From NCBI GenBank assembly GCA_019828565.1, contig JAHDYR010000015.1, positions 630,240 to 694,239 of the forward strand: a DNA stretch of 64,000 nucleotides, written 5' to 3'. The stretch is from Carpediemonas membranifera BICM. Lineage: Eukaryota; Protista; Fornicata. Position numbers and translations under genes: made by a program. Within the stretch, counting starts at the first letter, position 1; each line of letters starts with the position of its first letter. Below are positions 8,973-62,895 of this stretch, in pieces. Below the pieces are notes generated by a model. The model saw only the letters and a list, made by a program, of their open reading frames with translations. It was not told the DNA's origin and did no database searches.

Positions 8973-9235
8973 GCTTTTCTAAACCGATCCAGGGCTTTTG
9001 GGCTGGATAGTGGATGTCCCAATTTTCAGCTTTCAAAGACAGCCACAGAATATTCTGGACAGAATCTAGGATCTACACTCTTCACACGTTCACAAATAGC
9101 ACCCCAATCCCCTTCTCGCCCTCTGCCGACGATACCGTGCAATGCGGGTCACCCCGCCAACGGTGGCGGGCACCAGGCCGGGACTCCGGGCAATGTGGCC
9201 CAGTAAAAGCACTCATAGTCCGTCTCCATTTACCG

Positions 9236-12200
9236 TCACCGCTCAAGATGACTGATGCCAAACAATGTCAGCTCAAGCGCCTTCAGATGGTCGAAGAACT
9301 CCTTGACACGGAGTCCGTTCATCGTCAGCATGAACCCAAGCTCAGTCAGGTCGGGTGATGGCATCATGGCTGCGTTGCTCAGCTTCTTGAGCTCCTCGAA
9401 CCTGAATACCAGGTCGACAAAGTCCAGCGTCGCCAAGCTCGACTGCGCAGCCGTCAGCACATCGATGAGCTCGGCCCGGTGCTGGACGAATATCGTGTGG
9501 AAGACCGCCGTGTCCGAGGTCTCGCGGCCCCTCACGTCCTCCCGGAAGCCCGCATCGCACGACGAAGCCCGCAGGCTGAGGTAGCGATCACCCAAGGCGA
9601 ACACCATCTTCTCCAACGCCACACCATATGTGACGCCGGCTGCAATGTACTCGCGCTGCTCGACGAGGGTCTGGGCCTCGGCGAGGACGCCTTCACAGGC
9701 CCCGAGCTGGGCCATGTGCGGGTCGTCGTCGTCGGGCTCCAGACCCTCGTCGGCAAGCGTCGTCATGTGCTCGTGCAGGGTGTCGATGAGCAGGTTAGGG
9801 TCGATCTGGGTGATGATGTCCTTAAACTGCTTCTTTCCTTTCTTTTTGGAGTAATGGCCGATAGAGGCGGCCTGGGCGACCGTCCTGAGGCCCATGTACC
9901 TCTCCCTGATCATCTTACAATCAACCATCATCTTCTCCTGCGGTATGCCTTCCAGCTGGGCGAGTCGGTTGCGGTGACGGACGAAGAGGAGCTCGCAGAT
10001 CTTGCTCGGCGACTCCGTACGGCTCCGGATGGCGCGTTTTGTCGCCTTGTCGAAGAGGTCGGGCACGAAGTCGTCGACCATGCACGCCATGGCCAGCAGA
10101 CAGCGCTCGACCTCCTTCGTGTACAGGCCAGCGTGGTCCTCGGGCGTCAGGTGCGAGTGGATCGCCCAATCGACACCGTTCCGGATGGCGCGGAGGGTCT
10201 CGGGCAAGAGTTCGGGACGCATGTCGAACATCTTCTCGAGTGCGGTTTGCTCGTCCGCATAGTACTCCATCCGAGAGAGAATGTCATCACCTATGATACT
10301 TGCGGTGTACAGCGTCGCGAACCTCGCCGCAAGATCCATCCAGAAGTTCTCCTCCTTCTCAAGCTCCCGGGCCAGCGACGGGATGGCGGCCCGAAGCCCG
10401 TTGACACCCGGCGCCATGAACATCGCCTCCGCCATGGCGCAGGGGTGGGTGTCGGGTTCAAAGACGAACTTAGAGTTGATCTCGCCGAGGAGGGTCGCGA
10501 GACTGGTGATGATGCGATCGCAGTCGACAGCAAGGAGCACGCTGAGCCCCGTCATGCGGCGCATCGTGGTGTTGTCATCCAGCGGGAACTGCTCCTCGTC
10601 TTCGTCCTCCTCTTCATCGTTGTAGTCGTCCCATTCGTCGTAGAAGGCCCGGTGGTCGTAGTTCCGAGCTTTCACGACGGTCTGGGCGGGCGTGTCGTGA
10701 GATAAACGGGGCTTAGCATGGCTGAGGGCGTCGTCAACCTGCCTAAGACCGCCTATAAGGGCGTCCGCAGCGACAGTCCGCATCGCATTGTCGGCCTTGT
10801 CTGCAGGCATCTTGGCTCCCCCGGATACCGTCTTCGCGAGCTTCTTGAACTCCCTGAACTTCGCCCCGAGCTTGTCGAAGTCCACAGGCAGCCTCAGCTC
10901 GAGCACGGCGGGTCTGCAGACGTTGAACACCTCATGGAACAGCTGTGTCGTCCGCGCTGTCCGGCCTGCAATACCCGCCTCGGCAGCAGGGTCGATGGTG
11001 CCCGGGTGGAGCCGGACAAACTTGGCTGCGATGGAGTAGACGAGGGCGTCCACCCTTTGGTCCATCGCCAGCACTCGATCCGGACCAGGGTCCTTGGCTG
11101 GGACAGGCTTGGACTCCTGCTTGCTCTTATCGTTATTAATTGCCTTCGTTTCCCCTGTCAGCGCCGCCAGGATGCCGTCGAGGGCCCGTAAGAGGTCCTC
11201 TGCTCTGGCCTTGGCGAGTCTGCTGCTGATGTCGAGCCACCACGCCTGGCCCCAGACCTGGGCGGCGAGGGAAGGGTCGGCAGCCAGCCTGGCGATGTTC
11301 CTGACATCCCTGAAGCACTGCCCCAGGGCATCCCAGTCATCGCCCCCGGCCCACTGCCTCTGCCGGAGGAGCTTGACAAGCCTCTTCCGCTGGACGTTGA
11401 ACAGCTCATGGAATAGCTTCGCACAAGACTCCGTGCGGGCCGCAGCACCGGCAGCAGTGGCCGAGTCCAGCAGTGGCGGGTTCGACCCAGACACGGCCTG
11501 GGCTATCTCGTAAACCCGCTCGTCGACTCTACCCCCGAAGTCCAGGGCGGTCCTGATCCACTTCCTGCCGGCCTCGTTGGGGGCATCTGATGGTGCGGTC
11601 TTGGCCTTCTTAGGTGTGGCAGGGGTCAGCCCCGTGGCCCTGGTCGGTGCCACTGCGGTGATGCCTTTGGCCTGACGGGACCTGAGGTCGTCCAGGACCT
11701 CCCGCAGGTTCTCGAAGAGCCGGGTCACCCCAGCCTCCTCGAGCCTTGTCCGTATTTCCTTCCACCCGAATGTACCCCACATCTGGGTCGACTGGACAGG
11801 ATTACCGGCCACCTTGGCGATGAGCTTGACCTCCCTGAACTGCCGGCCGAGGTCATCCCACATGCCGGCCGTCGTCGACCGGTTCATATCCAGCAGCGTA
11901 CATGCCGTCTTACGGTGCTCGTTAAACATGTGGTGGAACAGCTTGGCCGTCGCCCCATCCCTGGCCTCGATTCCTGCCCTCGTCGCTTCATCGAAGAGAT
12001 CAGTCACCATCTCATCCATCATGGCTGCGATGTCGTAGATGTACTGGTCCGCCTTCGTCCCGTACGACTGGGCGATCGCGGTCCAGTGGGCCACACGCTC
12101 CTTGGAGGTCATGATGTCCCACGAGGGCTGGGGGGCGTTGGCCGAGCCCCCGGTCACAGCAGTCTTCATCGCTGAAGGCTTGCTTGGGGTATGGGGCAAG

Positions 12201-12643
12201 GAGCGCATGAAAGCCGTCTCCAGCTTCTTTGCGGCTCTGAAGTGGAACGTGAGCAAACCGGTGGTCACCATCTTGACAAGAGCCTCGCGGAGGACAGACA
12301 CATCGTTCTGTTTCGAGTGCAGCGCAGTATTGCGGAGGTCTCTGAGAGTCTTGAAGGTCTGGGCGTAGAGGTCTATGTCAACCTTATCGCCTGTGAGGCA
12401 TGCTAACACCTCATGGCGATGCCGCTCAAAAATCTCATGAAATATGGTCGTAACATACTGATTCTTACGCTCATTCTTCAGAATCTCACGCGCTACACTC
12501 GTATCGTCAGTGATTGCAGCAAAATGAACACCAAGCCTCATAACAGCATGTTCAGACGCAATTCCATAGTTGATAGCAGCAGAAACCCACTTTTCGTTTT
12601 TGAAATCAGCGTTACCCTCTTTTAATGGGTCGAATTCGGCCAT
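9236..12643 (-). CDS. 1135-aa protein of ~7 tandem helical domains, HEPN-like; only the first has RxxxxH
   Basis: Long ATG-initiated ORF with GC3 bias. Internal repeats share TxLFHxxFxxxR and DLGxxFRxxKxxA. Domain 1 has LRDLRNTALH. Domains 1 and 7 begin with the HEPN-type helix AxxLxxxxxYxxAxxxYGxALE. Confidence 0.6.
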   Translation of the reverse strand: MAEFDPLKEGNADFKNEKWVSAAINYGIASEHAVMRLGVHFAAITDDTSVAREILKNERKNQYVTTIFHEIFERHRHEVLACLTGDKVDIDLYAQTFKTLRDLRNTALHSKQNDVSVLREALVKMVTTGLLTFHFRAAKKLETAFMRSLPHTPSKPSAMKTAVTGGSANAPQPSWDIMTSKERVAHWTAIAQSYGTKADQYIYDIAAMMDEMVTDLFDEATRAGIEARDGATAKLFHHMFNEHRKTACTLLDMNRSTTAGMWDDLGRQFREVKLIAKVAGNPVQSTQMWGTFGWKEIRTRLEEAGVTRLFENLREVLDDLRSRQAKGITAVAPTRATGLTPATPKKAKTAPSDAPNEAGRKWIRTALDFGGRVDERVYEIAQAVSGSNPPLLDSATAAGAAARTESCAKLFHELFNVQRKRLVKLLRQRQWAGGDDWDALGQCFRDVRNIARLAADPSLAAQVWGQAWWLDISSRLAKARAEDLLRALDGILAALTGETKAINNDKSKQESKPVPAKDPGPDRVLAMDQRVDALVYSIAAKFVRLHPGTIDPAAEAGIAGRTARTTQLFHEVFNVCRPAVLELRLPVDFDKLGAKFREFKKLAKTVSGGAKMPADKADNAMRTVAADALIGGLRQVDDALSHAKPRLSHDTPAQTVVKARNYDHRAFYDEWDDYNDEEEDEDEEQFPLDDNTTMRRMTGLSVLLAVDCDRIITSLATLLGEINSKFVFEPDTHPCAMAEAMFMAPGVNGLRAAIPSLARELEKEENFWMDLAARFATLYTASIIGDDILSRMEYYADEQTALEKMFDMRPELLPETLRAIRNGVDWAIHSHLTPEDHAGLYTKEVERCLLAMACMVDDFVPDLFDKATKRAIRSRTESPSKICELLFVRHRNRLAQLEGIPQEKMMVDCKMIRERYMGLRTVAQAASIGHYSKKKGKKQFKDIITQIDPNLLIDTLHEHMTTLADEGLEPDDDDPHMAQLGACEGVLAEAQTLVEQREYIAAGVTYGVALEKMVFALGDRYLSLRASSCDAGFREDVRGRETSDTAVFHTIFVQHRAELIDVLTAAQSSLATLDFVDLVFRFEELKKLSNAAMMPSPDLTELGFMLTMNGLRVKEFFDHLKALELTLFGISHLER

Positions 12644-13400
12644 GTTGTGCGAGCGTTGTCACGCAGTTTAACCGATCTACTTCTGTGCTATTGAAGGATC
12701 CAACAATGTGTTTATACTGCGCAACAGCTTCGGAGGAAGTGAGATCATCAGTTCATAGTAGTAGTTCATGTACATCAGTTCATGCATAGCACAATGTGCG
12801 AGTCCTTCATCACCAATCGCTGTCTCTCTGACAGTGACTGCTCCGAAGTTCTGGCTACCCGTAGGCTGGCCGAGTCCCGACTCATCGGGTAGACTGCTCG
12901 ACTCGACTCTACGATGACCGCTGCTGATGTGTCCGTTCACATGGGACCTCATGCATTGTTGCTGCTCAAGCCCATGCCAAGACAACACGGCATTGTTTGG
13001 GCACTGGACGCTGGCTAATGCAGCATAAAGGTGCATGTTTTCTTCCCCCGAGATATGCAGAGATCTGCTTAGCTTGCCTGGTGGAGCATTGAGTGGACTT
13101 TACCATGAACCCGACGGCCGACTGCCACCCCCATGCACACGGGCCACTTGTCTCAAGTCATTACTTCTATCTCATGAGCACTCGCTGCCCCTTATCAACA
13201 CCCAGCGAGATGTCAAGTCCGCAGACTCAATGGAATCAATCCGTTCGAGCCATTGCCGAGAAAACCTTACAACTTGTGTAACCCCGAGAGATAGCAATTG
13301 ATTCGGTAGTATCTTTACAGTCACACCAGGGAGCACGGGGAGAGAACCATCGGAACCATTGCCGGGGGCTTACCCCTAAAGAATAGCCCTGCCTTCCCCT

Positions 13401-62290: not shown

Positions 62291-62895
62291 ATTCTGTGAT
62301 TGATTTATGATCGGTGGCAGGCAATACTGGGACTTCCGGATGAGGGAGATAGGGCAGTACAGCCGGCACGGAGCAGTACTACTACGAGCAGTCCCAGAGC
62401 AGTCTATTCTGTTGCGCAGTGTAAACACAACCGCGAGCCGGGCCAGCAGGCATGAGTAGAGATATTTTGCTGCGGCGTAATCCCCCACTCTCCGTTCTTC
62501 GGTGTAGTCCTGTCTGAAAGCTTGCTTGATGGAGGCTTTGATCGTATATATCTCCATCTTGTTGCGCACTACTGGTGTGCAGCTGATCATTGATGAAGAT
62601 GACATATAAGAGCCGACGATGAACACCATTACCAGCCTATACAAGTGTAGAAGTGAATTTAATGCGGAATAGAAGACAATGAGACGACGTGTGAGCTTGA
62701 GATTGTGATGTTTGCAGCTGTGCTGACGTCCACGAAGAAGACGCTTTGTGGAAGCCCTGGAGAAGACGATCTCCCTACCGACTTAAGACGTGAGTAGGAG
62801 GGAGACAGGGCAGTGTTGCGCAGTATAAACACATTGTTGGACCCTTCAATAGCACATATTCGCCTAGCCTAAAGTGCACAGCAGAGAGACACACA

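Follow-up and report, generated by a model that had tools for sequence, protein, structure and literature searches.

HEPN domains form the nuclease heads of Cas13, Csm6/Csx1, RNase L, Ire1 and Las1, and also of numerous toxin and abortive-infection systems, and are functional only when two of them are paired face to face. HEPN RNases use two half-sites: in Cas13, which is RNA-guided, two HEPN domains in one chain, both carrying Rx4H, make up one composite site. Here, we describe a gene of the free-living metamonad protist Carpediemonas membranifera BICM, the product of which is predicted to hold six, perhaps seven, HEPN-fold copies in a single chain with the catalytic motif in the first copy only, i.e. 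a new architecture within a known superfamily. The gene occupies positions 9236-12643 on the minus strand of the window, by which we mean the whole stretch of 64,000 nucleotides that was analysed (contig JAHDYR010000015.1, positions 630,240 to 694,239 of the forward strand, assembly GCA_019828565.1). An initial annotation of this DNA had proposed a tandem array of HEPN units, one of them putatively active as an RNase and the others catalytically dead, and had noted that no described protein with such a layout was known to it. A literature search for tandem or multiple HEPN domains bears out the latter statement, as it returned papers on Las1 and Csm6 only, and none for Carpediemonas. We know of no protein of six or seven HEPN units.

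Results

Relatedness of the repeat units

The protein was cut into seven units at the motif positions given by the initial annotation, and the units were compared with each other, firstly by Smith-Waterman alignment against shuffled controls and secondly with leave-one-out hidden Markov models (HMMs). The open reading frame (ORF) and its parts are as follows:

9236-12643, minus strand: whole ORF, 1135 amino acids plus stop codon, single exon, beginning at the first ATG downstream of an upstream stop
12194-12643, minus strand: unit 1, residues 1-150, predicted HEPN-fold domain and sole unit with a complete R-N-x-x-x-H (from AlphaFold2, the VIA-align search and the leave-one-out HMM)
11669-12103, minus strand: unit 2, about residues 181-325, without RxxxxH (A in the R104 column, N in the H109 column)
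11153-11590, minus strand: unit 3, about residues 352-497, without RxxxxH; an R-N pair lies at +4/+5 from the anchor phenylalanine, off the motif position
10724-11086, minus strand: unit 4, about residues 520-640, without RxxxxH
10592-10642, minus strand: acidic low-complexity linker, residues 668-684, read from the translation
10208-10576, minus strand: region called unit 5, about residues 690-812, helical
9719-10201, minus strand: unit 6, about residues 815-975, without RxxxxH
9239-9691, minus strand: unit 7, about residues 985-1135, nearest to unit 1 and to the paralog units, without RxxxxH (S, N and M in the three columns)

Units 1, 2, 3, 4, 6 and 7 are mutually related far above the shuffled controls, most pairs scoring between z 4 and z 37.5; the weakest are 4-6 (z 2.6) and 1-6 (z 0.4, alone not significant). 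Leave-one-out HMMs recover each of these six units at E-values of 5e-13 to 5e-26 (3e-18 for unit 1). The same six are recovered by an HMM built from the four units that lie outside the 1135-residue protein, in the two paralogs described below, with units 1 and 7 scoring highest. Unit 5 behaves differently. Its leave-one-out score is 0.8 bits (E 0.02), its only pairwise signal is to unit 3 (z 4.0), and neither hhalign nor the paralog-only HMM matched it to the family; modelled by AlphaFold2 with the family alignment it is helical, at a predicted local distance difference test (pLDDT) score of 52, which does not suffice for a fold search. Perhaps it is a unit that has decayed. Thus, the initial count of about seven related units stands for six of them and not for unit 5.

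The initial annotation had also named units 1 and 7 as the most alike. Each is indeed the other's best partner (z 15.4), although the closest of all pairs is formed by units 2 and 3 (z 37.5). A maximum-likelihood tree of the units splits {2, 3, 4, 6} from {1, 7, paralog units} with moderate support (83/87), a topology that would fit growth of the array through internal duplication between two older terminal units.

A Trp-rich extra segment, 'Q.WG...W..I..RL', follows helix 3 in units 2 and 3 and, more weakly, in unit 6, and is not present in units 1, 4 and 7. Judged from this distribution, it is a putative subtype-specific insertion of the internal units.

Predicted fold of unit 1

Unit 1 is the only unit modelled with confidence, and the evidence for the fold is this predicted model. 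With an alignment of 11 units, AlphaFold2 gave it a pLDDT of 92.7 and a predicted TM-score (pTM) of 0.85, all five models being above 89. The model has helices at residues 6-15 and 19-44, a helical insert at 48-82 (within 45-89), a helix at 90-108, a loop at 109-111 and a last helix in two parts, 112-128 and 130-147. Helix 3 carries R104 and N105 in its last turn, the loop begins with H109, and E31 is in helix 2. The hallmarks of the HEPN superfamily are a four-helix up-down core with frequent inserts between helices 2 and 3, a helix 4 that is often kinked, an acidic residue in helix 2, typically in Ex3[KR], and, in the RNases, a catalytic Rx4-6H at the end of helix 3 or the start of the next loop (Anantharaman et al., PMC3710099). 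The unit 1 model shows the helix 2-3 insert, the kinked helix 4 and the helix-2 acid, and places RNxxxH exactly at the superfamily's catalytic position, in support of the initial annotation.

The model was then compared with known structures in an exhaustive VIA-align search of 48,161 chains, to which a second look added further chains. HEPN-superfamily chains fill almost all of ranks 1-18, and the top 13-15 are nearly all HEPN. The best match is 2hsb (AF0298), with Z 10.5 and a root-mean-square deviation of 2.4 over 111 residues; the second look added 2q00 at Z 10.2. Further matches are 2jpu (9.2), 1ufb (8.9), Roquin (8.7), 1wwp (8.2) and sacsin (8.1), an AMPylated HEPN toxin, ST0689 and YutE (8.1 each), then 4nqf (8.0), HI0074 (7.6) and SO_3166 (7.5). 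The top list also holds HepS, AbiA, 7ae2 and Csm6; HepT toxins score between 7.3 and 8.2, and the C-terminal domain of Swt1 scores 5.7. Unrelated bundles (GIT1, She2p, the vinculin tail, BRIL) reached at most 6.7 in the second look. That the top ranks consist almost exclusively of HEPN chains is a stronger argument than the Z values themselves. Together, the confident model and the HEPN-dominated ranks support a HEPN fold for the unit, as had been claimed, and we consider homology of the family to HEPN very probable.

A rough register against the HepT toxins, counted from the C-terminal ends of the VIA-align ranges and so made without residue-level superposition, puts H109 within 1-5 residues of the HepT catalytic histidine, and within 1-2 residues for 7ae2, 7ae6 and one 5yep alignment. 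The reference histidine was H107 for 7ae2 and 7ae6; for 5yep it was H102, as worked out from Y104 in RX4HXY.

A language-model feature comparison was made for the paralog that has one unit. Its nearest named clusters are PF05168 (HEPN), PaREP1 and DUF4145, all of the HEPN clan, at a score of 0.80, which is a lead only. An ESM Atlas feature search with unit 1 gave scores of <=0.87 and pointed to no family.

The motif and the conserved columns

Three features of unit 1 stand out in the column alignment and the model:

12317-12334, minus strand: RNTALH (R104, N105, H109), an Rx4H of canonical HEPN type in which N follows R, taking up the final turn of the model helix 90-108 plus the first residue of the loop
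12551-12553, minus strand: E31, the acid in the long N-terminal helix (HEPN helix 2), from the column alignment
12416-12442, minus strand: F68-H69-x-x-F72-x-x-H75-R76, the most conserved motif of the family, in the helical stretch that is inserted between core helices 2 and 3

Conservation was scored in an alignment of ten units (unit 5 left out) anchored on the near-invariant F97. RNTALH, found as residues 104-109 at the place where it had been reported, puts the R, N and H of unit 1 at +7, +8 and +12 from this anchor. In units 2-7, the +7 column holds A or S, and the +12 column holds N, D, G, I or M. In the paralogs, one unit has R at +7 and the single-unit ORF has H at +12, and none has the full motif. 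R, N and H co-occur in unit 1 only, while in these columns the nine other units have R once, N once and H once. The joint keeping of the three residues in unit 1 therefore looks constrained rather than accidental, and such constraint argues for catalysis.

The claim that RxxxxH is confined to unit 1 is thus borne out, despite a slip of register in the alignment of motif strings on which it had been based: the unit 1 string starts at +3 and the others at +0, so that they are three residues out of step. The K or R of units 2-7 was considered as an equivalent of R104 and rejected, because those residues align with R101; the basic residue common to the units is the one at +4 (the R101 column), not the one in the R104 column. 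A second candidate motif, 'LRAIRNGVDWAIH' (residues 816-828), was also rejected, as seven residues separate its R from its H and its alignment is with helix 1 of unit 6.

The acid in the long N-terminal helix, to which the initial annotation had pointed, is kept in most units, with E or D in the E31 column of eight of the ten. In the insert motif, F72 is present in all ten, FH in seven, H75 in seven and R76 in eight.

Distribution of the family

A homologue search with the full-length protein found the protein itself only, and a search with the 11-unit alignment found none at E <=10. The seven-unit profile was run against 1.84 billion representative proteins and matched the protein itself and one paralog, referred to as P0002. 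Six-frame searches of the C. membranifera genome (24.24 Mb, 69 contigs) yielded two loci. The first encodes P0002 (KAG9395205.1, hypothetical protein J8273_0425), a spliced protein of 529 amino acids with three units, at L002:1231-3032 on the minus strand, which corresponds to about 1195376-1197177 of contig 1 of the genome (G000). The second is a single-unit ORF of 286 amino acids at L010:1441-2301 on the plus strand, about 110829-111689 of contig 2 of the same genome. It has a canonical E-x3-R in helix 2, keeps the histidine at the motif position and has Asn in place of Arg; its unit is followed by a disordered Pro/Arg-rich stretch and then by a hydrophobic segment at the C-terminus, resembling a tail anchor. 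At the sensitivity of HMMER, the family is confined to C. membranifera.

Profiles of PF05168 and PF18731 gave no significant match in the Carpediemonas genome, and a PADLOC scan found nothing relevant.

In unit C of P0002, the unspliced ORF reads '...RRAVHPGH' where the deposited spliced protein reads '...RRASGLG'. Since the two readings differ, the histidine after the basic pair depends on the intron call.

The gene and its surroundings

The ORF named by the initial annotation exists, at 1135 amino acids, and all strings quoted from it are found at their places. The deposited gene model (P0001, 1101 amino acids) begins further downstream:

12539-12541, minus strand: M35, start codon of the deposited gene model

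The open frame comprises 1140 codons for amino acids, of which only five precede M1, and M1 is the most upstream possible start because the frame extends just these five codons further 5'. A start at M35 would remove helix 1 and half of helix 2 from unit 1. The paralog-only HMM matches residues 9-34, and the unit 1 model includes these residues in the domain at pLDDT 89-98, which makes M1 at 12643 the better start. These observations indicate that the start codon of the deposited model should probably be moved to M1, the stretch concerned being 12539-12643.

Read support for the ORF comes from the Logan contigs of one 2017 sample of C. membranifera, the RNA status of which is a guess. They cover 9234-11835 with no joints and no differences, and have no coverage over the 5' 0.8 kb of the ORF, where both M1 and M35 lie. 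If the guess as to run type is right, the gene appears to be transcribed without splicing over its 3' 2.6 kb. The best-covered contig stops two bases past the stop codon (the 9234-9238 zone) and no contig covers 9100-9233, which suggests, if the run is RNA, a very short 3' untranslated region.

The neighbours of the ORF are unrelated to it: downstream lies a gene for a Cys-rich surface protein, and upstream one for a Sec3-like protein. A search for related loci seeded with the neighbouring histidine kinase found nothing. An element of about 44 bp lies at 12683-12726, i.e. 40-83 nucleotides upstream of the ATG of the ORF, with another copy at about 62814-62856. It occurs in at least 45 places in the genome at 92-98% identity (from 134 first-look candidates), its copies sometimes form close inverted or direct pairs, and it is flanked by unrelated sequence in different contigs of the 2017 run. 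It is a dispersed short intergenic repeat.

Discussion

Beyond the repeats, the predicted fold, the position of the motif and the restriction to one genome, we infer the following for the activity, the pairing and the roles of the units. The gene product would be specific to Carpediemonas and cytosolic or nuclear, with six secure four-helix modules of the HEPN fold and one degenerate helical module, separated by low-complexity linkers. The array may have arisen by internal duplication of a single HEPN unit, with the terminal units 1 and 7 probably standing closer to the units of the two paralogs, and units 2, 3, 4 and 6 forming a group of their own. Unit 1 alone keeps the full HEPN RNase half-site, with R104, N105 and H109 where helix 3 ends, plus E31 in helix 2, and would supply metal-independent endoribonuclease chemistry of the HEPN type. 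For this chemistry it would need a second HEPN module packed face to face, which could be unit 1 of a second molecule or a motif-less unit of the same chain. The motif-less units may thus be RNA-binding, scaffolding or regulatory partners. One active unit among dead copies is a plausible layout. Whether unit 1 is an active HEPN-type RNase, partnered in cis or in trans by a second HEPN module, we regard as evenly balanced, because the constraint on the motif has to be set against the single half-site, the paralogs without a full motif and a dimer prediction that gave no answer.

A number of results weigh against an active RNase of HEPN descent. Firstly, the link to HEPN is not visible to sequence methods. 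Pfam scans of the whole protein and of each unit gave nothing significant (the best HEPN value being E 0.16, for PF05168 in one unit), and sequence and profile searches of the PDB with the whole protein and the units gave noise only. Family alignments compared by hhalign with 27 PF05168 and 28 PF01934 (HepT) domains, gathered from Chloroflexota and Cyanobacteriota genomes, gave non-significant P values of 0.27-0.8; the sole local pairing, also not significant, was of E31 with the E of the PF05168 Ex3K motif. Secondly, by the tool's own caveat, Z values of 8-10 are within reach of generic helical bundles, and Foldseek, run with the unit 1 model against the PDB, found no match at E <=1e-3, all values being above 0.4. 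The Foldseek rows of highest probability were 2q00, 7bxo and 4nqf. Thirdly, the chain holds one half-site only, and the full Ex3[KR] is found in the one-unit paralog only, unit 1 having E-x4-R. Fourthly, neither of the two paralog proteins has a complete motif; catalysis is for that reason not the conserved feature of the family. We also list here a homodimer prediction with two copies of unit 1 (score 0.02), although it gave no answer and is evidence neither way.

One rival explanation is that the protein is a non-catalytic HEPN-fold repeat protein, in which all units bind or scaffold RNA, nucleotide or protein and RNTALH is a surviving relic. Its models would be the HEPN domains of Roquin and sacsin and the C-terminal domains of nucleotidyltransferases, and the two former, which are non-catalytic eukaryotic HEPN domains, match the structure well (Z 8.7 and 8.1). 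Ten of the 11 family units and both paralog proteins are without a complete motif; conservation is highest at hydrophobic residues or at those of the insert motif FHxxFxxHR rather than at the catalytic triad; and there is one half-site where HEPN RNases need two. Yet R, N and H are kept in unit 1 jointly and together with the helix-2 acid, while each motif residue is nearly lost elsewhere, which would be unlikely without constraint. We therefore hold this explanation to be a tentative one, short of probable and well worth keeping in view.

A further possibility concerns how activity would be held in check. The protein could be a self-contained regulated RNase of a novel kind, the unit 1 half-site being kept in inactive pseudo-dimers by its motif-less sister units and freed, or completed in trans, on RNA or another trigger; or the motif-less units could use the histidines of the insert (FHxxFxxHR) as an alternative active site. 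For AF0298-like HEPN-T proteins, an alternative active site built from a conserved histidine in the helix 2-3 insert has been proposed (Anantharaman et al., PMC3710099). The spacing from H69 to R104 in unit 1 is 35 residues, and the median spacing from the insert histidine to the motif arginine in 22 PF05168 sequences is 34. We consider either arrangement unlikely.

Least probable of all is that the family is not homologous to HEPN, being a lineage-specific helical-bundle repeat that converged on the up-down topology with RNTALH a coincidence: it would agree with the missing sequence and profile link to any HEPN family, with Z values that generic bundles can attain, with the Foldseek values and with an ESM Atlas structure search, which returned just unrelated families (TM 0.27-0.43). 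Against it, one superfamily supplies nearly all of the top 13-15 structural matches, and other bundles follow only after a drop in score; the unit 1 model unites four separate HEPN hallmarks; a canonical R-N-x-x-x-H stands at the superfamily's one position; and the language-model neighbours of one paralog are all of the HEPN clan.

If unit 1 is indeed an HEPN-type RNase working with a second module, the protein, with its six or seven HEPN modules in one natural chain and just one intact half-site, would represent a new way to build or regulate such an enzyme. Pairing of the active unit with motif-less ones, if it occurs, would make the protein a natural model of how pseudo-dimers control HEPN nucleases. 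The family itself would be a rare case of HEPN domains born and expanded inside one protist lineage. For annotation, the gain is a predicted fold and a candidate function for three 'hypothetical' Carpediemonas proteins, and a proposed correction of one start codon.

Comparison with known HEPN systems

The best structural matches of unit 1 belong to the HEPN-T clade (PF05168), namely AF0298 (2hsb), the PaREP1-type 2q00 and 2jpu, and TT1696 (1ufb), with Z 10.5, 10.2, 9.2 and 8.9, respectively, over about 110 of 120-130 residues. Common to unit 1 and HEPN-T are a short first helix, a long second one carrying the acid, the helix 2-3 insert and the kinked helix 4. The acid-to-aromatic spacing of unit 1 (W19 to E31, 12 residues) is also as in PF05168 members, in an alignment that is not significant. 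HEPN-T proteins are single-domain, prokaryotic and usually encoded beside a minimal nucleotidyltransferase (MNT), whereas six to seven units are found here in one eukaryotic chain. Unlike HEPN-T, the unit family has an extra insert helix and the FHxxFxxHR motif, and there is no detectable sequence or profile similarity between the two.

The HepT/DUF86 toxins of HEPN-MNT pairs (5yep, 7ae2, 8xdj; PF01934) have the same fold as the unit 1 model, at Z 7.3-8.2. They differ in their RX4HXY, where unit 1 continues as H-S-K and lacks a Tyr at the second position past the His, and in their setting: HepT genes adjoin an MNT antitoxin gene, while the ORF described here has no MNT partner and lies between genes for the Cys-rich surface and Sec3-like proteins. 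HepT proteins are not tandem arrays, and the PF01934 profile does not align with the family.

Cas13 is comparable in that it has several HEPN domains in one polypeptide. In the Carpediemonas protein, which is eukaryotic, the motif is found in one of six or seven units and there is no guide-RNA machinery. Among eukaryotic proteins, Roquin and sacsin have non-catalytic HEPN domains, and Las1, Swt1 and the KEN domains of RNase L/Ire1 are catalytic, eukaryotic use of the fold being what they have in common with the present protein. In all of these, a single HEPN domain stands among other domains in a widely conserved protein, whereas the Carpediemonas array consists of HEPN-like units only and is found in one species.

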